A stretch of 18,713 nucleotides of DNA from Prasinococcaceae sp. CCMP 1430 (GCA_013416795.1 RQSC01001236.1:5672-24384), one strand, 5' to 3'. Counted from the first letter of the stretch, positions 1 to 18,713 are shown. The notes: generated by a model from the letters alone, not told the origin. A program made the numbers and translations.

Positions 1-1328
1 CCGCGCACCGCGAGGAGCGCGAGCGCGAGCGCGCCGCTGCAGTGGCCGCGGCCGTCGCAGCGACGGCGGCGGGTGGCGGCACGCCGCGCCACGACAGCGG
101 CAGGGAGGGCGAGGCCTCTCCTGCTGCGTCGACGCGTTCGACACCCTCCCCGTCCGCCCGCATCGTGACCTCCCCATCAGTGCAGCGCAGCTACAGCGAC
201 GGCGAGAATCGCGCGGGAGTCAACAACAGCGGCGCGCTCGCACGCGCGGCTGCGACGCCCGCGGACAAGAGGAATGAGCGCCTGGGCCTCGCGGCGACGC
301 CGTCCGCCGCGGGTGCACAGGATGGGGATCTCCCCGCCACTGTGGGCGACGAGCTGAGCTCAGCGCAGCTGGAGTCCCTGGCGATGGACCTTGCCTCCGA
401 GATGGAGGAGCGCGTGCTGGCGCCCATCCGCCAGTGGCAGGCCGCTCTGCGCGACGCTCTGCGCTCCGTGCGTGACCTCGAGCACGCGCGCCTGGAGATC
501 GACGCGCGGCGCAGGCACGTGGCCTCCCTGCGGACGACGACGGAGAGGCTGCGCGCCAAGCTCACTGACAGCGGCGGTAGCCTGGGCGATGGCTCGAGCG
601 CGGAGTCCAGGCTTGACAAGGCCTTCCGCGCCCAGCAGCACAAGGAGGCGAAGCTCGGCGCTGCCCAGTCCGCCTTCGAGAGCCTCGAGGCCGACACGTA
701 CGAGCAGCTGGCGGCGCTGGCGCGCGATAGCACGCTCTTCCGCTCGTACATCGACACGGCCATCGTGCTGCAACGCGAGGCGTATGGCAGCCTCCCGACA
801 CCTTCCCTCACGGGGGCCAGCATGCCGGCGGCGGACGCCATTCGCAACACGACTGGCGGCTTCACGCCGGTGGCGGATTCGGACGCAGGCAGCGGTGCGA
901 GCAGCGCCCTCGATGCCTCGGGCGGTCTGCCGCACGCCCGCGTGCACAGCACGCATCTGGATGCGATGGGGCGGACGCCTGGCACCACACACGTCGGTCA
1001 CCTGTACGACGAGGAAGAGTACGACCACTACCCTGAAAGCACGCCCATGGGCGGCGGCGCTGCCATCCACCCGTATGCGGCGAGCCCGCGCGCTGCAGGC
1101 CCGCGGTACAGCCACATCAGCCACTCGCCATGGCCGCAGGAGTACCACGGCAATATGCCGGTGGACTGGACTGAGAGCGAGGGCGAGGGTCCAACCCCGA
1201 GGCACTACGGCTACCAGAGCGGTGGTAGCGTGGGGAGGAAGTTTAGCGACGGGCAGTCACCTATGACGCTGCCGCCTCGCGCTCCCCTCGCTCGACGCCA
1301 GTCGGCGGCGTCCGACACCACGTGGTAG
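1..1328 (+). CDS. 5'-truncated gene: BAR-domain-like/coiled-coil protein with a long disordered C-terminal tail
   Basis: Frame is open from position 3 to TAG at 1326-1328. The amphipathic helical block EMEERVLAPIRQWQ...RDLEHARLEIDARRRHVASLR...HKEAKLGAAQSAFESLEADTYEQLAAL...FRSYIDTAIVLQREAY resembles BAR helices 2-3. The tail is S/P/G/H-rich. The start lies outside the window. Confidence 0.55.
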   Translation, partial: AHREERERERAAAVAAAVAATAAGGGTPRHDSGREGEASPAASTRSTPSPSARIVTSPSVQRSYSDGENRAGVNNSGALARAAATPADKRNERLGLAATPSAAGAQDGDLPATVGDELSSAQLESLAMDLASEMEERVLAPIRQWQAALRDALRSVRDLEHARLEIDARRRHVASLRTTTERLRAKLTDSGGSLGDGSSAESRLDKAFRAQQHKEAKLGAAQSAFESLEADTYEQLAALARDSTLFRSYIDTAIVLQREAYGSLPTPSLTGASMPAADAIRNTTGGFTPVADSDAGSGASSALDASGGLPHARVHSTHLDAMGRTPGTTHVGHLYDEEEYDHYPESTPMGGGAAIHPYAASPRAAGPRYSHISHSPWPQEYHGNMPVDWTESEGEGPTPRHYGYQSGGSVGRKFSDGQSPMTLPPRAPLARRQSAASDTTW

Positions 1329-1620: not shown

Positions 1621-3556
1621 TCACAAGGCGGTGCCGAGCGCGTCCGCGCTGCGCAGCGCCGCGGAGAAACGCCCATCCTTGGCCCGGGCGAGCTCGGTCG
1701 GCGTGCCGCTCTCCACCACCTGCCCTCCTTCCAGGTACAGCACGCGGTCGCAACACATGGCGGCTTCGAGGCGGTGGGCCACAAGCTGCGCGCAGCGTCA
1801 GTGTCGCGAGAGACGGCGGCGGGCCAGCACGCGCGTGCGCATGGAGCGACCACGTGGCGCGCGAGACGTACCAGAATGGCCGTGCCGCTCTCCTTGCACG
1901 TCCGGACGGTCTCTTTAATGAGCCGTGACTGCGATGCGCCGTCGAGAGCGGCGGTGGGTTCGTCGAGCACGACGAGACGCGCGGTGTTGTCGTCGCCAGC
2001 ATCTGCGGGCGCGCCACCCTGGCCGTCGCCACGACCAAGGGTGCGGTAGAGCGCGCGCGCAACTCCGACGCGAGCGCGCTGGCCGCCGCTGAGCGCCGAA
2101 CCGGATTCGCCCACCGGCGCGTCGAGCCCGCCCATCGCGCGCACGAACTCGTCTGCGTCTGCGCGCTCCAGCGCCTTTTGCGCCCGCGCGCGCGCACCGG
2201 CGGCGTCGCTTGTCGCCGTGTGGCTACGGCCCAGCGCGATGTTGTCCAGCACGCTGCCCGAAAGGAGCTGCGCTTGCTGGGGTGCGAGTGCCACAAGGTC
2301 ATGCACGTCTACACAGCGGTGGTGGCGGTGGCCGGCGAGAGCAGGCGAACGCCGCACCCTCCTTCGTCAGCACCAGAGGGCCCAACTCTGCGAGCGGGCG
2401 GGCGAGCGAGCGAGAGACGCGCGCACGAACGCGACGCGCGAGCGAGCGCACCTTCGAGCTTCATGCCTTTCACGTCGCGACCGCAAAGCAGCACCTCCCC
2501 GGCCTGCGCGTCCGCGAGCCTCGCCGCCAGCAGCGCGACGGTGCTCTTGCCCGAGCCCGAGGGGCCGACCAGCGCGACGGCCTCGCCCCTCCGGACGCAG
2601 AGGGACAGGCCGCGCAGCGCCGGTTCGCGCGCGCCGTCATCCCCCGGACCCGCTGCGTTTGCGCCCTGGTCGCCCTGGCCACCGTCGCCGCCGATATCGG
2701 GCATCCGCGGGGCCGCCGCGTAGTCGAACCAGACGCCCTCCAGGCGCAGCACGTCCGAGTCGGCGTCGGAGCGGTCGCCGTGCGCGGCGGCGCCGTCCTT
2801 GACCGCGGGCTCGAGCGCCGCGAGCTCCTCGAGCCTCGCAATGGCAGGTTCGGCCTGCTTGAGCTCGTTGAAGGCGCTGCCCGCGTTCTGTATCGGCTCG
2901 ATGAGCAGGGCGAGGCACGTCACGAACGACACCAGCCCGCCGGCGCCCAGCGCGCTGGCGCGCACCGCGGCGGCGCCCGCCAGCAGCAGCGCGAGGACCG
3001 TCGCCGCGTACACGCCGGCAATGGCGCCGGTGGCGATCGCGCGCGAGCGCTNNNNNNNNNNNNNNNNNNNNNNNNNNNNNNNNNNNNNNNNNNNNNNNNN
3101 NNNNNNNNNNNNNNNNNNNNNNNNNNNNNNNNNNNNNNNNNNNNNNNNNNNNNNNNNNNNNNNNNNNNNNNNNNNNNNNNNNNNNNNNNNNNNNNNNNNN
3201 NNNNNNNNNNNNNNNNNNNNNNNNNNNNNNNNNNNNNNNNNNNNNNNNNNNNNNNNNNNNNNNNNNNNNNNNNNNNNNNNNNNNNNNNNNNNNNNNNNNN
3301 NNNNNNNNNNNNNNNNNNNNNNNNNNNNNNNNNNNNNNNNNNNNNNNNNNNNNNNNNNNNNNNNNNNNNNNNNNNNNNNNNNNNNNNNNNNNNNNNNNNN
3401 NNNNNNNNNNNNNNNNNNNNNNNNNNNNNNNNNNNNNNNNNNNNNNNNNNNNNNNNNNNNNNNNNNNNNNNNNNNNNNNNNNNNNNNNNNNNNNNNNNNN
3501 NNNNNNNNNNNNNNNNNNNNNNNNNGCCGCGGCGCGGCGGCGGCGCGCGCCGCCAT
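1621..3556 (-). CDS. ABCB29: ABC transporter B family half-transporter, ABCB29/ATH12-like (probably plastid). Exons: 3556..(gap)..2452, 2308..1872, 1785..1621
   Basis: TMD end SFVTCLALLIEPIQNAGSAFNELKQAEPAIARL is recalled as matching plant ABCB29. Also Walker A GPSGSGKST, Q-loop APQQAQLLSGSVLDNI, signature LSGGQRAR, Walker B LVVLDEPTAALD and H-loop LVAHRL. Two GT-AG introns restore the frame. The ATG at 3556 (MAARAAAAPR) is tentative because it lies across the N gap. Confidence 0.85.
1786..1871 (-). other. Spliceosomal intron (86 nt, phase 0) in the ABC gene
   Basis: Donor CTG|GTACGT, branch ACTGAC (1802-1797), acceptor CGCAG|CTT. Splicing joins TAIL to LVAHRL. Confidence 0.85.
2309..2451 (-). 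other. Spliceosomal intron (143 nt, phase 1) in the ABC gene
   Basis: Donor AAG|GTGCGC, branch GCTGAC (2371-2366), acceptor TGTAG|AC. Splicing gives GMKLE-D-VHDLVALAPQQ. Confidence 0.85.
3052..3525. other. Assembly gap (474 N)
   Basis: Run of N. It hides most of the ABC transmembrane domain and is probably shorter than the true missing sequence. Confidence 0.99.
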
Positions 3557-5036: not shown

Positions 5037-8000
5037 ATGTCTCAGTACTGTCTCGGCGGTGTGTACGGGCGGCGGGCGGACACGACGCGGCCCCTTCCGC
5101 ACGCCGGAGTCACACCCATGACGAGGCACTTCTCCCTCGCGCGGCGCCGGAGGCGGCACGGGCACCGCGCGGCGCAGTGCCTGGCGGCGCTGCTGCGTGG
5201 GCCGTCGGCGCGGGGCGCGCTGGGCGCGACAGTCGCGCTGCTGGTCGTTGCGGTGGCAGGCTGCGGCCTGCTCGCAGTGAGGCTCGGCGCGATGCCGTCG
5301 CTCTCGTGGTCCGCATTCCTCGGCCGAAGCGGCGGCTCGTCCCTGCTCCGTGCGCCTGGTGCCCACTTCGGCGGCAGCAGCAGCGACCTGCTGTCCATGC
5401 TGGTCCCGACGCACACGTGCGTGCGCGAGCGAGTGCGCGCCACCGCCCCAGGACTGACCCCGCGCGTGCGCAGACGCGAGGCTGACGCGCGCACGCGCGT
5501 CCTGGCGAACGGACGTGCCATTTCCACGCTGCATCCATCGCAGGGCGCAGCAGCGCGAGCCGTCCCATCGCTGCGGCGCGCCCACGCTCCCTGCCCCGCC
5601 GCCCGGCGCGCTGCCCCCTGGCGGCGCGCCCGCCGTCGGCATATGCACGCTCGTGCGCGACGAAGCGCGCGCGCTGCGTGAGTGGTTGCATCATCACGCC
5701 GCTGTCGGCGTGTCTGTCGTGTACGTGTACGACGACAGCTCAACGGACGACACGGCCGAGGTGCTGGCCCCGTACGAGGCCGCTGGCTTCGCGCGGCGCG
5801 TGCCATGGCCATCAGACCACGCCCAGGCGGCCGGGGTGGTGTGCGACGGCGGGGAGTCTGGCGAGTACAGTTATTGCCAGACCGCCGCGCTCAACGACTG
5901 CCTCGAGCGCGCCGCTGCGGGCGACATGGCGACGGGCAGCTGGCTGGCATTCGTCGACACCGACGAGTTTCTCGTGCCAAAGCTGCCGCTGCGCACGGTA
6001 CAGCAGGCGATCGAATCGTACGTCGGCATGGGCGCCGGCGCCGATGGGAGCGCGTGCGATGTGCTCGCGGTGCCTGGGGCCTTGCACGGCTCGAACGGCG
6101 CCGTCGCTCGGCCGTCCAACGGTGAGCTCGCATCGGACGCGTTCGCCGCTCGTGGGCCTTGGGAGTTCCCCAATGTGAGCGCCCGCCATGATGCCGGTGG
6201 GGAGGCCGACGGGGAAGCGCCCCTCTCCTCATCATCGTTGCCGCAGCTCGAGGCGCTCGTGCGCGCCTTCGACGGGTCGAAACGTTCGTTTGAGAAGGAC
6301 GCGATCAAGCCGAAGAGCTTCATTCGACTCAGCGACGCGGTGCGCACAGGGGACGTGAGCTTCGAGCGACTCGAAGGCCGGGAGACAGGATGTGGATCGC
6401 ACCTGCCCGTCGCCCGCAGTCGCGACGCAGCTGCGTTCGGCACGGGAGGAGGGGGCGCCGTCGTGTGCACCCTGATGCCTGCGGCGACGTGCATCGCTCG
6501 CGTCGGCGACTTCAACGAAGAGGAGGTTGCCAAGCAGGAACGGCGCCGCAGGAGGCACGCCGCATGGAAAGCCGAGGGAGGGACTCGACGCGCCACCAAG
6601 ATTCGAATACGCAGCACATCAAACCATACCCTCGACGCGACGCCCGTACGCGGTCTAGAAGACGACGCGGCTCTTGTGATGCTGCGTTTGAAGAGGAAGC
6701 AGCAGAGGCAGCGTGCTAGGCAGGCGCAGGAGCATCGTCTCCAGCGGTTGGCACGCGGCGGCTCCCTTACCGCGAGCTCCCGCGGTCTGAGGCACCTCAT
6801 GCAGGACGACGCTCGAGACGATTTTGTGGCACAAAAGTCCGCCGGAACATCTCTACCGCTTGGGCACCTGCCAGAGCCGTCGGTGATTACGCAGGGCTTC
6901 AACAAAGGCATGGCTGTGCGAGTGCTAGAGTCATCGCCTGCGGACGCGCTGCTGTGGTACAATCACTACAAGATGAAGTCCTCGGAGGACTGGGGATGGA
7001 AGCAGATCAAGGGCGTAGCGCAGGCCCGAGGTGACAACAAGTGGCGATCGGTGACGGCCAACAAGCTCGACAGAAACGAGGAGCCCGTCGACGCATCGAC
7101 GCGCGCGCTCGCCGACATCGTTGCCTCGTCGCTCGGAGGGCGCGTCTCCGACTCGGGCGGTACGCACGCCGGCACCGTCGTTGTCGTAGACTCCTCGCCT
7201 CAACCCTTCAGCCAGAGCAGCGGCGCACAGCTTATGCTCAGACTATTGCACGCTGCGGGCGCTGGCGTGGGGACAGACGCCACCCTCGGCGCGACGAGCA
7301 AGCTCGTCGACGGCCAACCTGGGCTGAGCACGCTGGCCGAACGAGCCATGTGCACCCTTCCGTCCGCACCAGCTTTCGGTGCCGGCGCACCCGAGTCGCT
7401 GGCTGCAGAGCCCGTGTCATTAGAGGCCGCTCGCTGGGGGGACGATGCAGCGCGATGGGTGCGCCAGCTCGTTCACAGCAATGCGGCACGACAGGTCCGC
7501 ACGCAGTCTGCGCCAGCACTCATCGGCTTTGATACGGCAAGAGGCGACAACGCTATCGTCGGCGGAGGCGGCGCGCTCGCGCTCACGCTGTCGCACGGGA
7601 CGCGATGGACGAGCGTGCTGCCGCCAGATTCCGTCTTTGTTGTGTCAATTGGCGAGCCCGTGGTGGTCGCCAGCGACATGCTGGCCGCCGGGTGGTGCGA
7701 CACGCTCGCGCAGGGACACGCGCTGTGGGCTGCGCTCACTGTGCTCACGCTCGATGCCGTCGCCCAGTTTCGCCACAAGCTCGTCGTGGCACCCGCGGCC
7801 AAGCACGCACCACGAGCGGTGCTGCGCGAGTGCATGGGTGCCCTTGAGGTCTTCGGCGTGTCGAGCTGCGGTGGGCTCATGACGCCGTCTGAAAAGGAGC
7901 TCGAATGGATTGCCAACTCCTCGACAGCTACCGCTGACGCGCAGCACATCGGGAGCGAGAGCGCTCCCACCGCCGCTGTCGGCCGCGGTCGTGACGTCGG

Positions 8001-11000
8001 CGATGGCGGCCGAGCGAGCGCGTCTTCGCCAATCTCGCTGGCGAACGCCCTCTTTGCGATGGCGCGAGTGGCTGCTGCTGGGACGCGCGCTTCCGCATTT
8101 GCGTCGGATGTGCGAACTTCGGATGCAGCGGGCTGGCTCGGTGGGGTTGTCGGGGACGGCGGCAGTGCCGCGACGCCACTCGACATTGCATATGCGGCAG
8201 TCAGATTATCAGGCGTCGGCGAGGCCAATCGAGGCGAGGTGCCGTTGCAGAGGACGGCCGGCACTGCGGCGGACGCGTTCGAAGCGTTGCGAGACGCACG
8301 AGACGCGCTGGCGTGGCGAGTATGCGCAGGCCGAAGCGCACACGCGCAACGTATGGCGAGGCCTTCTTCTGATGGCGAGGGTCCGACCGACAATGTTGGT
8401 GGCGCACGCGTTGGATTTGGGGGCGACGCAGCTGCGAGTGGAGACACGGACGCGGTGAAGGCAATCAATGCAGGTAGGCCCCCCTCGAACTCGAATGTCG
8501 GGTCTCTTGCAGCGCACGGTGCGCTCGCAGTCAACGCGAGTGCTTCAGCGACCCAAGTCGGCCGTCACATTGAGCAGGCGAGCGTTGGAACCCTCGAGCA
8601 CTACGACGTGCTCATCGCCCGAGGCTTTCGGTGTGCCGGAGCGCCTCTCTCGCGCTCTGAGATGCACACTCTCAACGACGCCACGCCTGTGCCAGGCCCC
8701 GAGTACTGCGCCAGCATGTGCGACGCTCTCGACGAGTGCGCGCACTTCTTGTATGCAGGCTTCGGGAGGTGCTGCCGCCTCTTCGACGCACGGGCCTGCA
8801 ATACAACGATGCCAGGCACGGGGACGCTGCAGACGTACACCAAACGTGCGCGAGCGACACAGACTCTTGCCGAAGTTGACATTGAGGCGTACATGCACTC
8901 GGTGACTGCGAAGCGCCGGGCACTGCCAGACGCCGACGCGCAGAGACTTCTCCTCACGCCTGGGGACGACATCGAGCAATCGCGAGGCCCACTGTCTCAG
9001 GTCAAAGCTGGGCTGACTCTCATGAAGGCCAACCCGCGCAGGTTTCGCGTGGTGACGCCCGTGGCCTCCGCTGCGTCCGCAGCACAGAACGAGGAGGAGG
9101 TCCGCGCCATGTCCTCTGCGGCGGTGGCAGACTCTGTCACTAGCCATGCTGACAACGGTGCAGGCATTCTTGTTGGAGACGATTCGGGTGTTCGAGGGGA
9201 CGGGGATGACACTGGTGGCGCTCACGGCGTCCCATCGTCAAACCGCGTGGGCAATGCATTCATTGGCGCGGGAGACGGCCTCGACTGCCAGCGCGGAAAC
9301 ACCACTGTGCTCATAGCAGTGATGAGCACATCGTCGCCTTCGAGTGCAGCATCGCGTGCCACCATTCGCGCGACGTGGGGCGATCGTACCACGCCGACGC
9401 GTATGAACGTGTGTGGCGTCGGTACGGCGGATGTGGTCTTCGTTGTGAGCGCCCGCGCACTTGAACGCTCGAGCGCTCTGCGAGAGGAAGCGCAGCTGCA
9501 CGGTGACATCTTAGGCGTGCACATCGAGGACTTCGGCGCCTCGTCTGCGCGCGCTGGTGGTGACGCAGCTCACGCCGTCGATGACGGACGCCCGGCACCA
9601 TCCTCGTCGCTCTTTAGGACGCCCGACCTTACCGTTTGTGCCACACATGAGAACACCACCGGCGCACCATACGGCAGCGATGAGGCTGGGGCGTGTCCGC
9701 ACACGGTGCTCGACAGAGACAGTTACCTTCACTTGCCGTACAAGCTCGCAGCGATGGTCGGGCTCTTCGCGACCGCTCCTGCATACGCCAAGTATGACTT
9801 TTTCATGAAGTTCGACGAGGACGGCGTCGTGAACGTCCCAGCAGTTCTGCGCTTGGCTGGCACTCTCGACCCGAGGCTCACGTACGCCGGCAGCTTCGTC
9901 GACTGCGCGCCGGTGCCAAGCCGCGGCAAGTGGGCAGATCCGCAGGCGGCCGCTCACGCGCGCACGTACGCAGCCCCTTATGCGCTGGGAAGCAGGGGCT
10001 ACATCCTCGGCCGCGGGGTGGTCAAGTACGCCGCTCGCAGGCTCGCCGATATGTCACCAACATCCGCGCTTGGGCTGGCGGCGACAACCGTGGCGTCGCT
10101 CTCGCGCGTCAACGAGGATGCTATGCTGGGCGCGCTGCTCGCGCCCGTGCTGCAGCACGTGCAGGTGCGGCTTGTGGATAGGGAGAGCGCGTTTGGAGCA
10201 CGTTCGGCGGGGCGGCGCGGTCGTGGACGACGTGGTATGGAAATGCAATCGCAAGGGCGCGCACTGCAACAGGTCACGTCACGATTTGCCGGGCGCGCCG
10301 CCGATGCGCCAGCAGCTGCGCTTAAGCGGCTGCGCGAACACCCCAATAAGGCGGAGCTCCTCACCGTGACGCAGCTGAAGACGCCCGAGCAGGTCGCTGA
10401 GGCATTCATTATAATCGCCGGTGACGCGAGCAGGACACGCACATCTGGCACGACTGGCGTCAAAGAGAGCCCCACGTTGGTCGAACCGCCGTCGTCGATT
10501 GCCAGGTCCATGCCAGTCGCTGTTCGCGCGGCAGAGGAGGCGCAGTCGCGCTCGGCCGCGCTGCTTCAGGCGCAGCGCGGCGATTTGTACGGCGCGCAGT
10601 GGTCCGGCCGTGGTCAAGATGCGGGCGGGTCTTTCAGACGGCGCGTGGCAGCTGAGACATTTGCGTTCGGCGGTGCATCCGCTTCGGTGACTGAGGATCT
10701 CCAGTGGAGACAGGGGGGGCATCAGCATGCGCTCCGCACGGTGCACGAGCAGCAGCGCGACTCATTGCGCGAGGCCGACGACGCTGCACCCCAAATTGCA
10801 CTCCTGGGCTTCCACCACTCAGGCACGAGCATCGCGATGCGGCTGGCCATGTTGCTCGGCATATGGGGCGGCGATTTGGAGGATTTCGAGCTGTCTCCCT
10901 CTAACCCGCTCATGAAGTTCTGGGAGCGCAGCGATGTTGTCGAGGCCAATCAGGAACTCTTTGACGCAGGCTGGGCGCACTCTGTCGCGCACGGGGTGGG

Positions 11001-13142
11001 AAGGGGCGACGCGGCAGCGCCTCCTGTACCACTGAGCTCGTGGCTTGGCTATGGCTTCGACCGCGCGAAGCTCTCAGCCAGCATGCTCACGCTGTTCGAG
11101 AGGCGCGCGGAGGCTGCGGTGGCCGAGCTCGCCGAAGGCGCGCGCGGCGAGCCGTTCGTGGTCAAGGACCCGCGCCTGTGCCTCACCCTCCCGCTGTGGA
11201 GGCCCTTGCTGCCCAACATGCAGTGCGTGATCATGTACAGAGACCCGCAGGAGCTCGTGGACTCGATGGTTGGGCTGTCAGATGTGCTCGACGATGGCAG
11301 CGGTGCAATTGCAAGGGCACTCGCATCGAGCCCCGCGAATGCCACCCTTGGCTCTTCGCGTGGCGCGACCGGTGGCAGAGGTGGGCTAGAGACCTACGCC
11401 CGCGCGCTCGCGATCGTGTCCACCGCCCCCACGAGGGGCGGCGCGGTGAAGTCCAAGGAGTTTGCGACGGACGAGCGCCTGCGCGCCGGGCTAAAATCCG
11501 GCGTGATGGAGGTCGTGGAACAGGTGCGACCGCGCGCAGTGCTGCGTGTGCCTACCAGCCAATGCGTTTGAGCGCTGCGTGTGACTGACGTCATGGTGCG
11601 CGCTACCTGAACACTCCCCTACGTCTATGCCCGCGCGTGCACGCCACCACGACACGCACGCAGTACCTGACGTCTGCACTCGAGGCGTGCGTCGGGGCGC
11701 CCACCGCGATCGTTCCGTTCGACTCGCTCCATGACCCGCGCGCGTTTGCGTTCGCTCTGCGCGAGAGATTGGTGGACGCATGGCCTGGCTTGGGCGATGT
11801 CCTTGCGACGCCCACCGACGATGCCATTGGTGAGGCGCTCTTCGGCGCCGACGAATGGGCCGCGCAACGAGCGAGTGCAACGACCAAGGGCGCGCCTGTG
11901 AAGCTGGAGCTGGGGGACCCAGCTCGAGCGGGTAGGCGGCGAGCAGAGGCGGCAGCGATGCGCGGTGCGTCGCCGGCATCTGCTGCTGTAGCAGAAGGCA
12001 GCGTCGAGATGGCCAGTTCGACAAATGATATGACAATTCGTGAGCCGTACGCAGGGTTGAGCCTCGGGCTGCAGCGCCTCTCAAAGGCGTTCGAGGGGGC
12101 ACTGGCGGCGACTGCCAGTGGCGGGCCCGACGATGCGTATGGCGATTCTTCTTCACGCGGCGAGCGGCACCCGCTCGCCCCGAGGCCTGCATCTCTCGCA
12201 GCACACGTGCTCTCCGAGGCAAGCGTCGGCGGTCATGTGCGCGTTCTGCTCTTCTGGACGACGAGCCCGGAGTCCTTCGGCGCGCAGGAGTCGAGCGTCC
12301 TCGAGAGCATCTTCTACCACCACCCGCAAGCGGAGGTGGCCGTGTTCTCCAATACACTGCCCACCGACTTCTTTGCGAGCTTCGCGCTTGCGGGCTACGC
12401 GCTGAGCGTCGAGCCATATGACCTTCGTGGCACCCTCGCGAAGCACTGGCCGGCGGACTTTGACTTTTTCAGCGCGGAGAAGTCATCGGATTTCTTTTAC
12501 TCGCACGCCACGGACGCTCTGCGCTTTGCGCTCCTGTACGAGCGCGGCGGCGTGTACATGGACTTCGATGTGGTCCTCGCCAACCCGCTCGACAACCTGC
12601 CGGAGCGATGGCTGGCCTTCCAATACTCGAAGGAGCACCCGCCGAAGCGCACCAACTGGGCGGCGCGTCTCTTCGATCCGGAGGACACCAGCACGTGGGT
12701 GGTCAACGGCGCGATGATGGCTTTCCCCCCGCGGGACCCCTTCATGGCACGCGCGCTGGAGACGGTGCCCGAGGTATGGGACCCGGAAGTGTGGTACTCG
12801 ATCGGTCCGCAGCACCTCACCAACCTGCTGCTCGACAGGGTGAATGCCCGGCGCGTCCCCGAGTGGGAGGGGGTTGCCATCCTGCCGATGGAGGCCGTCG
12901 CGCCAGTTCCGTGGTACCTCGCGGAGGCGTGCACGCGGCGCTCGGTGGGCGGGCCGGATGACTGCCCGGTCTCGTGGCTGCAGGTGAAGCACCACGCCCG
13001 CGCCTTCCATCTGTACAACAAGATCACGAGCGCCGCGAGCATCGAAGAGGGCTCGCTGTACCACCACCTCCTGACCGCCTTCAGGCTGCCGGCGCCCGCT
13101 CCCGGGGTGCTGGGGAGGAGGGGAGACGCCCGCCTCAGGTGA
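5037..13142 (+). CDS. Giant membrane-anchored multi-domain glycosyltransferase/sulfotransferase, ~2612 aa. Exons 5037..5416, 5544..11523, 11664..13142. Order: TM, GT92-like, degenerate sulfotransferase, PAN/apple, GT31, sulfotransferase, GT32
   Basis: TM: ALGATVALLVVAVAGCGLLAV after RRRRRH. GT92/GT2-like: ICTLVRDEARALREWLHHH...YVYDDSSTD...QTAALNDC...WLAFVDTDEFL...KSF...NHY. PAN: CASMCDALDECAHFLY...CCRLF. GT31: LIAVMS...RATIRATWG...EEAQLHGDIL...DSYLHLPYK...FFMKFDED...GYIL...EDAMLG. Sulfotransferase: LLGFHHSGTS...FWE...VKDPRLCLTLPLW...MYRDP. GT32: ESIFYHHP...DALRFALLYERGGVYMDFD...NGAMMAF...IGPQHLT...HLYNK. Both introns splice in frame. Confidence 0.8.
5417..5543 (+). other. Intron 1 of the giant GT gene (127 nt, phase 2)
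   Basis: Donor AC|GTGCGT, branch GCTGAC (5481-5486), first downstream AG is TCGCAG|G. Splicing joins the TM exon to the 2018-aa frame (LVPTH-T-AQQREP). Confidence 0.75.
11524..11663 (+). other. Intron 2 of the giant GT gene (140 nt, phase 0)
   Basis: Donor CAG|GTGCGA, branch ACTGAC (11584-11589), first downstream AG is ACGCAG|TAC. Splicing removes the stop at 11569-11571 and yields VVEQ-YLTSALEAC...VPFDSLHDP, which completes the sulfotransferase C-terminus. Confidence 0.8.
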
Positions 13143-13400
13143 CGTCGCGGGCCTCCCACCCGCGTGTCCGTGCAGCGCGGCGCGCGTCGGCAGACTCGGC
13201 TCGCGTGCACCGTTTGCTGTACGCAGCCAACATTAACCCTACATTTATGACCCAAAACATTTCGGTTGAAGCGTGGCGCCGAAGCCGGGGGGATCTGCGC
13301 GCGCGCGCTGGGCGGGGGCGGGCCACACCGCGCGGGGAGAGAGGAGGAGCCCCCCCCGGGGGCCGTGGGTGGCGGCGTGGCCCGCGCCGCCACCGCGGAA

Positions 13401-14334
13401 ATGGCGACGACGGGCGATGCGGGCGGCGCGCCGCGCCTCTACCACGAGCGCCAGGAGAGCGGCTTCTGCGGCGCGCACGCGCTCAACTGCCTGCTGCAGG
13501 CGCCGCTGCTCGACGAGGTCGCGCTCGCCCAGGTCGCCGCCGAGCTCGACGCCAGGGAGGCAAAGCTCAGGGAGGGGCCGGCCCTGCCGGCCGGCGGGGG
13601 CGGGCCGCCGCCGCGCGTGTCGCGCTCGACAGACACCTGGATGGTCCGCAAGCTCGAGGGGGCGGACGGCACGGCCAACGTCGACGCGGCCGGCAACTTC
13701 TCCGTGAGCGTGCTCGCGCAGGCGCTCTCGGCGTTCGGCGCCGAGCTGCTCACGCCCACCCAGGCCGACGCGCAGACGAGGCGAGCGGGCGGGGCGGCGC
13801 AGTCGGGGTGCGTCGCCGCCGCATGCCTGCGCGCGCTCCGCGCCGGCCCAAGCGCTGACGCCGGCGCGCTCGCCGCCGCCGCCGCCGCGACCTCCTGAAC
13901 GCAGCGTGCTGTCCGCGCCGCACCTGGAGCGGGGCTTCCTGCTCAACCGCGCGTCGCACTGGTACGCGCTGCGGCGCGTGCGCGGCGCGTGGTACGACTT
14001 CAACTCGCTTCTCGCTGCGCCGCAGCATCTGAGCGACTTCCACCTCGGGGCGATGCTGGCCGAGCTGGCGGACAGCGGGGGGAACGTCTTCGTCGTCCGC
14101 GGCGCGCTGCCGGACAGGGAGCCGCAGCCGGACGACGCGTGCGAGCGCGGCAGGTACTGGTCGCCGGAGGAGGCCGCCGCCGCGCTTGCCGAGGCCGTCC
14201 GCGCCGCGTCGGAGGGCGACGCCCTCGCCGCCGCGCTGGCGGCGAGCGTGCACGAGAGCCAGCGGGTGCTCGAGCGCACGGAGAGCGAGGACGCCGACCT
14301 CGCGCGCGCCATAGCGGCCAGCCTGGCGGACTGA
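13401..14334 (+). CDS. ATXN3: Ataxin-3 homolog (Josephin deubiquitinase with two C-terminal UIMs). Exons 13401..13780 and 13905..14334
   Basis: LYHERQESGFCGAHALNCLLQ (catalytic Cys), GNFSVSVL, SHWYALRR (His), WYDFNSL (Asn), VFVVRGALP. UIM-like motifs DALAAALAAS and EDADLARAIAASL. Confidence 0.9.
13781..13904 (+). other. Ataxin-3 intron, probably GC-AG (124 nt); alternative GT donor at 13808
   Basis: Donor GAG|GCGAGC, branch GCTGAC (13854-13859), acceptor ACGCAG|C. Both candidate donors are phase 2. Confidence 0.6.
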
Positions 14335-14543
14335 GCATCGGCCGCCCGGCATGTATGTATGTGCAAGTGTACAAGTAGCAGTTGGGACGGGGAGCTCGTG
14401 CGCCGCGCCCCTGCGCCTCTGCGCGCTGGGTGCCGCCGCGGCCGGCCGCGCCGCGCGTATCGCCCGCTTCGATATCGCCCGCTTCGCCTAAATTACGCCA
14501 CGCGCGCGCGCCGGCCGCGCGACTCCTACCGTCGCGCCCCCGC

Positions 14544-16623
<2,080 letters not shown>

Positions 16624-16631
16624 GCTGTTAA

Positions 16632-16681
16632 TACATGCCGGGAAAACTACACCGTACAAACAATGCTACAGTACAGTTACA
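16632..16681 (-). terminator. Cluster of TGTA-type putative polyadenylation signals, including TGTAA overlapping the ASNSD1 stop codon
   Basis: Six TGTA on the minus strand within 50 bp between convergent stop codons. UGUAA is the known chlorophyte poly(A) signal. Confidence 0.45.
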
Positions 16682-18554
16682 CGCGCTCGGCCACCGGCGA
16701 GTCTATGACGACTGTGCCGCCGTGCGCCTTGTTTGCCGCCTTGTTGCTCCCGAAGTCGCGCACGTTTCGTTGTTTGGCGATGCGCGTGCCGAAGTGCACC
16801 GCGCGCTTCACGCGAGCCGCCGCCTTGGGCAGCCCCAGCTGGCGCGCGATCGCACGGAGGCACGCCTTGTCGCCCTCGCCCGGCGGACGCGACAGGTCCG
16901 CGATCGCCCACACAGGGTGCGCCAGCATGGCGCACACGAAGTCTTCGTCCAGAAACGGCGAGCGGCACTCGCGCGAGCGGTCCGCCATGAGCCTGTCGTC
17001 GCGGCCGCAGTTTCGGCTCCAGAGCCGTTGCATGTCCAGCGCGCACTCGCGCTCCAGCGCGCCCGGCCCGCCCTCGCGGTGTTTGGTGCGGTGGCGCGAG
17101 TAGCCGCAGCACTGCTCGTCCGCGCCACCGCCGAGCAGAACCACCTTCGCCCTGCCGCGATACTCACCAGGCAACGGGTGCACAGCACCATCGCGGTATA
17201 TGGTGCACGCGCCAGCGCACGAGGCCGCCGTCCACAGTGCCGCACCAATGTTGTAGTCCATGTGCGTACGGCACGGATAGAGGGCAGCGCGCAACCGCGC
17301 CTCGGCCGCATCCACAGCGTCCAGCGTGGAGTCGACCTCGACGAGGCGAAATTCGCGCGACGGGCACGCGCGCGCGAGTTCGGCCGCGCCCTCGCGCGCG
17401 GAGAGGCGGTCAGGCGAGCTGCCGCCAGCAAAGCACACCGTCACCAGCTCAATCGCCAGCTCGGCTGGCACCTCGTCGGCGGCCAGACGCGCGACGAGCG
17501 CCGAGTCCACGCCGCCGCTGAAGAGGACAGCGACACCGGCGGCGGGCAGGGCAGGCGACGGCTCCCCGCTACCTGCGCCGCCGCAGGCACCAAGCCGCGC
17601 TCGCTCGCTCGTGCCCCCCCTCGTGCCCGCGACCACGCTGGACGCCGGCGCGTGCGCGTGCGCTCCGAGCGTCGCGCGGGCGCACCGCGCCCGAACGGCT
17701 CGCCGCAGGTACTCGAGGGCGTCGCCGGCGGCGGCTTTGCGCCCTGCCACCACCATCTCCACATCCTCGGGCGCGGAGGCGAACGCGGTGCCGTCGGCGC
17801 GCCGGTGCGCCGCGAGTGTCCTCGGCACGCTGCCTTCTGGCCACTCGAGGCGCTCCAGCTCACGCATATCCGCGGGCGTACGCTCGCCGCCCGCAGCGCT
17901 GCCCAACCCGACCCCTACGCGGCATCTGTACACGCCGGGCGGTACCTCCTCCCACGCGTCGGTCTCCGCGCCGAAGGCAATGGAAGACAGGACAAGCGCC
18001 GGTCCCCGCGCGCCGAGTTCGGGCCGAGGCCCACTTGCCGCCCGCGCTGGGCGGCGCATCTGCAGCGACCGCCGGCCGTACACGTCCCTGCCGAAGTAGA
18101 GCGTCCGCGACTGTGCGCAATAATACACCAACGCCCAAGGACCGCGGAGGGCGGCGAGCGCGGCGACAATGGCAGTGCCATCGCCGGACCGCGGAGCGGC
18201 TGCGGCAGCGTCCAGCGCGCGCAGGACGGCAACGCCGTCTCCGCGCTCCTCATCGACCTCGACGCCGCCGAAGACTTCGCCATTGTACAGCAGTGCGCTC
18301 CCCTCGACGCCCGCGAGCGGATACGACGGTGCCTCCAGCCCTGCGCCGCCGCCGCCGCCGCCGCGCAGGCGCAGAGTCGCCTGCGCGAGCGTGAGCGCGA
18401 CGCCGGCACCATCGATCTTGACGCGCGCCACTCCGAACGCGTCCGGCCCGCGCCTGCGCAGCGCCTCGCTCGCCGCGTCCAGCTCAGCCTCGCCGGCCTC
18501 GCCCCCACCAGCGCCCAGCCCCGCGGCAGAGACGACGCACACGATGCCGCACAT
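16677..18554 (-). CDS. ASNSD1: Asparagine synthetase domain-containing protein 1 (ASNSD1/YML096W-like), single exon, 625 aa
   Basis: N-terminal MCGI (class II glutamine amidotransferase Cys2), YNGE, GRDVYGRRSL, VAVLFSGGVDS, SPDR, GADEQCCGYSRH, RNCGRDDR, PFLDE, GDKACLR, KRAVHFGTR. Confidence 0.9.
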   Translation of the reverse strand: MCGIVCVVSAAGLGAGGGEAGEAELDAASEALRRRGPDAFGVARVKIDGAGVALTLAQATLRLRGGGGGGAGLEAPSYPLAGVEGSALLYNGEVFGGVEVDEERGDGVAVLRALDAAAAAPRSGDGTAIVAALAALRGPWALVYYCAQSRTLYFGRDVYGRRSLQMRRPARAASGPRPELGARGPALVLSSIAFGAETDAWEEVPPGVYRCRVGVGLGSAAGGERTPADMRELERLEWPEGSVPRTLAAHRRADGTAFASAPEDVEMVVAGRKAAAGDALEYLRRAVRARCARATLGAHAHAPASSVVAGTRGGTSERARLGACGGAGSGEPSPALPAAGVAVLFSGGVDSALVARLAADEVPAELAIELVTVCFAGGSSPDRLSAREGAAELARACPSREFRLVEVDSTLDAVDAAEARLRAALYPCRTHMDYNIGAALWTAASCAGACTIYRDGAVHPLPGEYRGRAKVVLLGGGADEQCCGYSRHRTKHREGGPGALERECALDMQRLWSRNCGRDDRLMADRSRECRSPFLDEDFVCAMLAHPVWAIADLSRPPGEGDKACLRAIARQLGLPKAAARVKRAVHFGTRIAKQRNVRDFGSNKAANKAHGGTVVIDSPVAERV

Positions 18555-18713
18555 CCCTCTCACACGCCGCGCGAGCGGATGCGCAGCGGACGCCGGAGGG
18601 CACGCGGGGGCTGAGCCGGCCGAAGAACAGCCGGTCGCGTCGGCGGGACGGTGGAGAGGTCGGGCCGGCCGCCCGGCCGGCCGGCCGGAGGCGCGCGCGA
18701 GGCGGCCCTCTCG

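Follow-up and report, generated by a model that had tools for sequence, protein, structure and literature searches.

A single gene of Prasinococcaceae sp. CCMP 1430 very likely encodes one polypeptide that carries, in order, a membrane anchor, a GT92-like domain, a pseudo-sulfotransferase (ST1), a PAN module, a GT31 domain, a sulfotransferase (ST2), and a GT32 domain, and probably only four of these six domains are catalytic. Based on sequence and structural comparisons, the protein may act in the Golgi, assembling an extended, galactose-rich glycan of the wall with mixed alpha and beta linkages and sulfating it, a reading that we regard as evenly poised. The gene lies within a window of 18,713 nucleotides (the whole stretch of DNA analyzed) and comprises the following features:

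5037..5416, + strand, exon 1, encoding a basic cytosolic tail, the membrane anchor, and the first part of the stem (ATG at 5037, ATG at 5118 likelier)
5208..5297, + strand, hydrophobic segment, inferred type II signal anchor (hydropathy peak 2.41)
5417..5543, + strand, intron 1 (127 nt, phase 2, GT donor, CAG acceptor, frame-preserving)
5544..11523, + strand, exon 2: GT92-like domain, pseudo-sulfotransferase, PAN, GT31, and most of ST2
5620..7090, + strand, GT92-like inverting GT-A domain (DTD at 5956, conserved NHY at 6961, low-complexity inserts)
7165..7950, + strand, ST1, remote sulfotransferase-family domain, probable pseudo-enzyme
8601..8850, + strand, PAN/apple module (PF00024, PAN_1, E 4.5e-4)
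9301..10430, + strand, GT31 inverting GT-A domain (DED at 9814, NED at 10111)
10781..11860, + strand, ST2, sulfotransferase domain interrupted by intron 2 (GFHHSGTS at 10807, KDPR at 11164, R-x7-S at 11236)
11524..11663, + strand, intron 2 (140 nt, phase 0, GT donor, CAG acceptor)
11664..13142, + strand, exon 3: C-terminal part of ST2, linker, GT32 domain, and stop codon
12219..13090, + strand, GT32 retaining GT-A domain of A4GALT/A4GNT type (DFD at 12561)

Splice-site and frame computation confirmed the gene model of the initial annotation, in which two GT-AG introns join three exons (380 + 5980 + 1479 = 7839 nt) with the reading frame preserved, yielding 2612 codons and a stop. Branch-like CTGAC words lie upstream of both acceptors, and intron 2, which contains stop codons in all three frames, interrupts the sulfotransferase fold of ST2. 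The open reading frame does extend from 5037 as first proposed, but translation is likelier to start at the ATG at 5118, predicting a protein of 2585 rather than 2612 aa: residues 1–27 include 4–5 sites that differ between wild strains, compared to 1–2 across the next 99 residues, and the cytosolic tail counted from 5118 has the same length as in a related species. Hydropathy identified 5208–5297 as the sole hydrophobic segment, with none in exons 2 and 3, in agreement with the type II anchor originally placed there, and in the mRNA of the related-species orthologue the equivalent hydrophobic segment is spliced to GT92.

This orthologue, which is 47–57% identical to the gene studied here, has an identical domain order within a single open frame, more than chance would produce. 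The single-polypeptide architecture initially proposed held. Two spliced orthologue contigs run from the anchor through GT32 and include all six domains in a single frame of ~2150 aa. The orthologue is without intron 2 and its alignment is flush at this point, exon 2 ending at residue 1719 and exon 3 beginning at residue 1720. Since the orthologue's own intron sits elsewhere than intron 1, the exact donor of intron 1 is a prediction. The predicted join of the exons rests on this orthologue, not on spliced reads of the organism itself: no exon–exon joint was seen in contigs from four sequencing runs searched over 7261–13250. Two RNA-type runs provided short contigs on both sides of intron 2, those listed lying within exons, while one further run is DNA, as one of its contigs extends into intron 2. 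This lack of a joint among the contigs examined, and the two ORFs given by automatic gene calls on metagenomic DNA, would also fit an intron 2 that is left unspliced here, in which case the long ORF would stop at 11571, leaving GT32 to a gene of its own or to a silent one. We consider this extremely improbable, as read-through would truncate ST2 by its final helix and strand, exon 3 would be without a membrane anchor, the splice sites are conserved and the orthologue continuous, and the RNA-type contigs flank the intron on both sides. None of the observations named beforehand in the initial annotation as counting against its architecture was encountered.

Wild populations were evaluated through six metagenomic sequences, which cover exon 2 without indels or frame breaks. 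The splice sites of intron 2 are identical in 6/6 of these, and a 1-nt insertion at 5520, within intron 1, is found in five wild sequences. Across the main domain blocks, wild strains displayed pN/pS ratios of 0.14–0.35, and the domains are 49–71% identical to the orthologue, compared to 34–37% for most linkers (53% for one). An assembly chimaera was ruled out by six independent metagenomic contigs that are colinear along the whole gene, and an apparent stop variant at 5066 was an artefact of two adjacent changes scored singly, wild sequences reading through this position.

Pfam searches were run per exon, with the related-species orthologue used wherever continuous sequence was required, and upheld the GT92, PAN, GT31, and GT32 assignments of the initial annotation, whose three DxD motifs were located intact where claimed. 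For the GT92-like domain, the profile PF01697 matched with an E-value of 1e-20 (74 bits for a cut-off of 23) over profile positions 7–127 of 249, the N-terminal half is 71% identical to the orthologue, and both DTD and NHY are kept across relatives. The best Foldseek match of the orthologue domain was poplar GalS1 (GT92, PDB 8D3T/8D3Z; E 2e-5), obtained with a low-confidence model that is confident only N-terminally; GalS1 has the DxD in common with this first domain, at an identity of only about 21% across about 166 columns. In GalS1, a CBM95 module precedes the single catalytic domain, and the product is a neutral beta-1,4-galactan, while the nematode GT92 enzyme GALT-1 transfers one Gal. 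By family, the GT92-like domain would add a beta-linked sugar (beta-1,4-Gal in characterized members).

The GT31 domain matched the Galactosyl_T profile PF01762 (E 1e-6, 28.8 bits for a cut-off of 23), with both the DxD and the xED base motif present, and is 66% identical to the orthologue with a pN/pS of 0.14. The best PDB match of its orthologue counterpart was human B3GALT6 (E 7e-7), an enzyme that makes a short linker, and we infer that GT31 adds beta-1,3-linked Gal. GT32 scored over the cut-offs of both PF04488 (E 1e-12, 48.9 bits) and PF04572 (E 2e-8, 35.2 bits), is 67% identical to the orthologue, and matched Och1 weakly. It is predicted to add an alpha-linked sugar (alpha-1,4-Gal/GlcNAc in PF04572-bearing members); A4GALT/A4GNT-type enzymes, including Gb3 synthase, usually cap chains. 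A relationship to large clostridial toxins (TcdA/TcdB, PF12919) was rejected, the similarity being clan-level (14 bits for a cut-off of 23.6, 24 residues around the DxD) and no delivery domain of these toxins being found among the Pfam matches. A metagenome scan with GT32 recovered distant matches only. The PAN module fell just below its cut-off (20.4 against 21.4 bits), and displays six Cys in both species and 51% identity to the orthologue.

Among the two sulfotransferase-like domains, ST1 is devoid of the HHSGT, KDPR, and 3'-phosphate Arg motifs, and the orthologue retains only RSG in the first loop. Scored with an HMM built from sulfotransferases of other organisms, ST1 outranks each of 1000 shuffled sequences in both species, and hhalign gave E-values of 0.005–0.008 at a probability of only 5–7%. 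The ST1 block had no Pfam match and nothing useful in an Atlas search, and the orthologue GT92+ST1 model was poor (pLDDT 44 overall, 30–65 in the ST1 part), with no sulfotransferase among the 50 Foldseek matches listed. The block is 49% identical to the orthologue, compared to 34–37% in the flanking linkers, and has a pN/pS of 0.21 from 11 variants. ST1, which had initially been described as degenerate, is probably a conserved pseudo-enzyme of sulfotransferase type whose PAPS motifs have been lost.

For ST2, structural matches supported the sulfotransferase family first assigned, whereas its end, formerly set at ~11780, reaches about 11860 across intron 2. HHSGTS lies at about 10813 and YRDP at 11236, where the R-x7-S 3'-phosphate motif fits a published consensus (PMC11625862). 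Sulfotransfer_3 matched below the Pfam cut-off (E 0.011), and both a single-sequence search and a sequence search of the PDB gave nothing useful. In Atlas features, the continuous ST2 domain of the orthologue reached 0.97 to Sulfotransfer_3 clusters, every match listed being a sulfotransferase, and the top six structural matches of the orthologue model (pLDDT 79) were all sulfotransferases (Z 10.6–11.7), followed by kinases and isopentenyltransferases at Z 8–9.8. TPST1/2, mycobacterial Stf1/Stf9, and the olefin-synthase sulfotransferase (Sulfotransfer_3 type) have their fold in common with ST2, which carries the R-x7-S motif; it differs from them by a His in place of Arg/Lys, by an identity of 12–17%, and by its fusion to glycosyltransferases. 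Since this His occupies the canonical catalytic Lys/Arg position of the 5'-phosphosulfate loop (PMC11625862), one may ask whether the sulfotransferase-fold domains of a multi-glycosyltransferase synthase serve instead as binding modules or in other P-loop chemistry, e.g., phosphorylation, without sulfate transfer. The sub-threshold Pfam score of ST2, the kinases and isopentenyltransferases next in its structural ranking, and the motif-less ST1 would be compatible with this scenario. We deem it highly improbable, however, given the sulfotransferases found by both structural and Atlas matching, and an alignment in which the His is present in 15/15 full-length rows, DPR is fully conserved, and the 3'-phosphate Arg almost completely. 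By family, ST2 is predicted to transfer sulfate from PAPS.

The architecture had initially been put forward as without a known characterized precedent, and literature searches indeed identified no paper describing the six domains together, nor such a fusion in titles or abstracts; a NCBIfam search returned nothing useful, and the portions of genome-paper supplements available as text do not mention the GT92, GT32, or sulfotransferase families. It is not isolated, however: GT92-ST-GT32 proteins are encoded by the dinoflagellate Togula jolla (EukProt EP00448, MMETSP0224; three paralogues) and by another marine organism, with the same three domains, order, and HHSGT-type sulfotransferase as in this gene. 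Described in no paper found and uncharacterized in databases, these proteins are shorter (about 1050–1180 aa), have no GT31 or second sulfotransferase copy, and begin with N-termini more like signal peptides; one paralogue also includes a PAN module, there N-terminal. Their GT32s and the one studied here form one branch (SH-aLRT 97), and we interpret the six-domain protein as an expansion of an older GT92-ST-GT32 core. An origin of the GT31-GT32 pair from other GT31-GT32 fusions was rejected, as the GT32s of these fusions branch elsewhere and only weak matches were obtained for their GT31s.

Several animal Golgi enzymes likewise combine a type II anchor with two or more catalytic domains that serve the same glycan, as proposed here, including LARGE1 (GT8+GT49), EXT1/2 (GT47+GT64), chondroitin synthases (GT31+GT7), NDST1, whose sulfotransferase domain resembles ST2 in structure (Z 9.6), and DSEL. 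These enzymes have two domains, and none of them is known to combine three glycosyltransferase families with a sulfotransferase or to include GT92 or GT32. The same principle is found in Bcs3, the capsule polymerase of Haemophilus influenzae b, with three catalytic domains and a polymer-binding domain in one chain (PMC10299916), although this bacterial enzyme performs no sulfation and is built from unrelated families (ribofuranosyltransferase, phosphatase, ribitol-phosphate transferase), making it an analogy rather than a homologue.

In the mechanism we propose, a type II Golgi membrane protein of ~2600 aa would expose six lumenal domains, and its older GT92-ST-GT32 core would pass one acceptor between beta- and alpha-transferases, generating an alternating sulfated chain. 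GT31, presumably added in this lineage, could provide priming, a third repeat residue, or a side chain, while the PAN module and dead sulfotransferase copy, presumably gained here too, may retain the chain as it grows or set the distance between active sites. The retention of GT92-ST-GT32 as a unit in distant organisms fits domains that have a substrate in common, and we consider it likely that they act on, and sulfate, one common glycan. The nearest solved relatives are a galactan synthase (GT92) and a galactosyltransferase (GT31); that all three donors are UDP-Gal is possible, though doubtful. GT92, GT31, and GT32 are polyspecific with low identities to characterized members, which counts against this reading, as do the His of ST2 and the missing spliced read; the capping role of A4GALT/A4GNT-type enzymes and the linker role of B3GALT6 would suit a short glycan just as well.

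The fusion could instead merely co-localize or co-regulate enzymes with different substrates, or the chain may be cleaved at its low-complexity linkers, which are 120–220 aa long and poorly conserved. The same modules also occur elsewhere in many other combinations (GT31-GT32, ST-GT8, GT92-ST, transporter-GT32), yet the GT92-ST-GT32 order is kept in a dinoflagellate, another marine organism, and this lineage, and there is just one membrane anchor, which makes this scenario very unlikely. The main rival is a single-pass enzyme making a short, defined sulfated oligosaccharide (e.g., beta-1,3-Gal, beta-1,4-Gal, an alpha-Gal cap, and sulfate) carried by wall glycoproteins or by glycosphingolipids, the carrier being recognized by PAN. 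Such a product would suit the linker enzyme B3GALT6 as closest relative of GT31, the PF04572 domain that GT32 shares with the capping enzymes Gb3 synthase and A4GNT, and the single Gal added by GALT-1; however, most fusions of two transferases (LARGE, EXT, chondroitin synthases) act as polymerases, as does the closest solved GT92 relative. We view the short-glycan enzyme as somewhat unlikely, and slightly favor a repeating polymer as the product. A stronger version of the polymer reading, in which a self-contained eukaryotic synthase would prime, polymerize, and sulfate a galactan whose linkages alternate between alpha and beta, is rather unlikely. Carrageenan-type backbones alternate beta-1,4- and alpha-1,3-linked galactose (PMC12223506), and a D-galactan sulfate recorded from a dinoflagellate (PMC9698436) counts in favor of the galactose-rich wall glycan of the main reading.

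Prasinoderma coloniale has a thick wall whose chemistry is stated as unknown, and synthases for cellulose, mannan, xyloglucan, and xylan are all missing (PMC7455551), which counts in favor of the main reading if the organism is this species; a G+C content of about 68% is in line with the published 69.8%. The genus Prasinoderma has neither scales nor a gelatinous envelope, its wall being thick and multilayered (PMC4860620), so the 'scales or mucilage' product initially suggested is unlikely if the organism is a Prasinoderma. Algal polysaccharide sulfation pathways have been called relatively unexplored (PMC11625862), and the protein would define a His-type sulfotransferase subfamily mostly missed by Pfam. 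With three transferases and a sulfotransferase in a single gene, the question of algal wall building can be tested directly: its four catalytic domains predict which repeat or glycan to seek, and the dinoflagellate proteins, with three domains in about 1050 aa, are compact enough for easy expression. A polymerizing protein would offer a one-gene route to defined sulfated glycans. Should the galactan synthase reading be true, the GT92-ST-GT32 core would represent an unrecognized family of one-gene sulfated-galactan synthases in this green-algal lineage and dinoflagellates, and a first candidate enzyme for a carrageenan-like backbone type.

The window DNA is G+C-rich and eukaryotic, and the three ORFs that the initial annotation had joined into one fusion gene (window 5037-13142, plus strand) are real. 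Both introns, 5417-5543 and 11524-11663, run from a GT donor to a CAG acceptor and leave the reading frame intact, the exons summing to 2612 codons plus a stop, and every motif quoted in that annotation lies where it had been placed. Across six metagenomic contigs of the same species (98-98.6% identical), which represent two main haplotypes and hence not six independent tests, all four splice sites are kept and the exons carry no indel; in five of the six, a single-nucleotide insertion lies within intron 1. Metagenomic copies with a named source come from Tara Oceans marine metagenomes. Intron 1 is less firmly placed than intron 2, because the relative's intron sits elsewhere, and translation probably starts at ATG 5118, since variation is free in the 27 preceding codons and the tail that begins at 5118 matches that of the relative. 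At 6490-6800, a low-complexity, very basic insert within the GT92-like domain is not in the orthologue; wild strains keep its frame, without indels, and it may be a hidden in-frame intron.

The claim that these exons encode a single polypeptide was borne out by a related species, through spliced transcripts and an exact exon 2/exon 3 alignment. A search with exon 2 recovered the orthologue (P0002), whose single ORF terminates in GT32. Two JGI contigs from this species (L003 and L004) match its genomic contig at >99%, except that two introns are cleanly absent, and are therefore spliced transcripts; they encode the anchor, GT92, a first sulfotransferase-like block (ST1), PAN, GT31, a second sulfotransferase (ST2), and GT32 in one frame (2146-2152 aa, 5' end incomplete). 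Exon 2 aligns up to orthologue residue 1719 and exon 3 from residue 1720; the predicted second junction thus fits to the residue, and the relative lacks an intron at this point. Since intron 2 interrupts a helix conserved throughout the sulfotransferase subfamily, an unspliced product would be without the last helix and strand of ST2. Splicing in RNA is seen in the related species' contigs, and for the window's own organism no joint was found in four sequencing runs mapped to 7261-13250; RNA-type contigs listed for this organism lie within exon 2 and within exon 3 alike. Overall, the architecture is solid and unusual, and it is most improbable that GT32 is a separate gene.

Within the window, no glycan gene cluster was found around the fusion gene; its BAR-domain, Josephin, and asparagine-synthase-like neighbors are unrelated genes of the housekeeping type. 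Features of the window and of matching contigs are:
42-1328, plus strand, BAR-domain protein gene
3052-3525, assembly gap (run of N), beside a minus-strand ABC-transporter-like ORF
13401-13855, plus strand, Josephin gene
14541-15908, minus strand, adenylosuccinate lyase gene (763-2112 in the relative's contig L001; ~85% identity between the two species)
16680-18563, minus strand, asparagine-synthase-like gene
8422-10105 in L010 and 8566-9705 in L002 (wild contigs), ankyrin gene with weak zf-MYND
The adenylosuccinate lyase gene lies downstream of the fusion gene in the window and upstream in the relative, and this rearranged local synteny supports orthology. Wild same-species sequences have the ankyrin gene (~1.7 kb) between the fusion and Josephin genes; the window lacks it (13229-13272), reflecting either a strain deletion or an assembly difference.

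When Pfam was searched exon by exon, GT92, GT31, and both GT32 profiles exceeded the cut-off, upholding the assignment of these families, PAN and Sulfotransfer_3 fell just or well under it, and nothing was recovered for ST1. The GT92-like domain has a DxD and the conserved His, with poplar GalS1 as best structural match (the predicted model being confident in its first part only). GT31 keeps DxD and xED, its nearest solved structure being human B3GALT6, and GT32 matches both A4GALT-type profiles. For ST2, the predicted fold of the orthologue sequence (pLDDT 79) best matched six sulfotransferases (Z 10.6-11.7), followed by kinases and isopentenyltransferases (Z <=9.8); language-model features also point to a sulfotransferase, and the 3'-phosphate motif agrees with the published consensus. 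A His invariant across the subfamily occupies the canonical catalytic Lys/Arg position. Subfamily alignments (A1/A3) delineate a group with this substitution that is mostly under the Pfam cut-off and often GT-fused. That the sulfotransferase folds are present but non-sulfating is quite unlikely. ST1 is, on sequence comparison, probably a remote sulfotransferase copy: in both species it outscored 1000/1000 shuffles against a profile from other organisms' sulfotransferases, and profile-profile comparison gave a probability of only 5-7%. Its PAPS motifs are lost. The block is nonetheless conserved, with 49% identity to the orthologue versus 34-37% in flanking linkers and a pN/pS of 0.21 (few variants), as would be expected of a binding or structural module.

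Searching for the same domain order recovered the six-domain form in the related species and a GT92-ST-GT32 core in others. With the C-terminal half as query, 1.84 billion cluster representatives yielded this core and no further six-domain protein. One JGI sample holds three core paralogues, one clustering with a Togula jolla entry and one with an N-terminal PAN; all three contigs start with the end of the dinoflagellate spliced leader. Another core protein is from a marine organism, and the amoebozoan Clastostelium recurvatum has GT92-ST without GT32. A core profile search gave only one further full member among 8000 candidates scored. In a quick GT32 tree (106 domains picked by similarity to the query, root arbitrary), all core proteins fall on one branch (SH-aLRT 97). 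The simplest history would be an older three-domain fusion into which the window's lineage inserted a second sulfotransferase copy, PAN, and GT31. Other fusions of related modules were also observed: a TPT-family (nucleotide-sugar-type) transporter joined to GT32 (P0063, P0054, and similar 1100-1200 aa matches), once with a polysaccharide pyruvyl transferase in between, i.e., transporter, modifier, and transferase on one chain; His-type sulfotransferase to GT8 (P0147, P0169); GT31 to GT32 (P0033, P0055, P0170, one with CBM4/9); and GT32 to GT6 (P0079).

We infer donors, linkages, and order of action from polyspecific families. As the likeliest reading, with about even confidence, we propose a protein held in the Golgi by its single anchor, in which one acceptor would be handed among two beta-transferases (GT92-like and GT31) and an alpha-transferase (GT32), ST2 would add sulfate, and PAN and ST1 would grip the chain; the product would be a galactose-rich glycan, extended and sulfated. 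The chief alternative, in which a single pass leaves proteins or lipids with a short sulfated glycan, is a weaker possibility, and the best-known members of these families fit it equally; mere co-localization of the enzymes seems unlikely.

LARGE, EXT, chondroitin synthases, and NDST are two-domain Golgi enzymes that share the multi-domain principle but not this set of families. The same principle is illustrated, again with other families, by Bcs3, a bacterial four-domain polymerase (PMC10299916). Consistent with the claim of an undescribed architecture, neither the GT92-ST-GT32 nor the six-domain form was found in the literature searched, most subscription journals lying outside it. The Prasinoderma coloniale genome paper describes walls that are thick and chemically unexplored, and reports that enzymes for cellulose, mannan, xyloglucan, and xylan are absent (PMC7455551). 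The published G+C content, 69.8%, is in line with the sequence studied here. If the organism is a Prasinoderma, the product is likely destined for the wall or wall glycoconjugates, because members of this genus have neither scales nor a gelatinous envelope (PMC4860620). With the fusion gene, an outstanding question can be tested directly.
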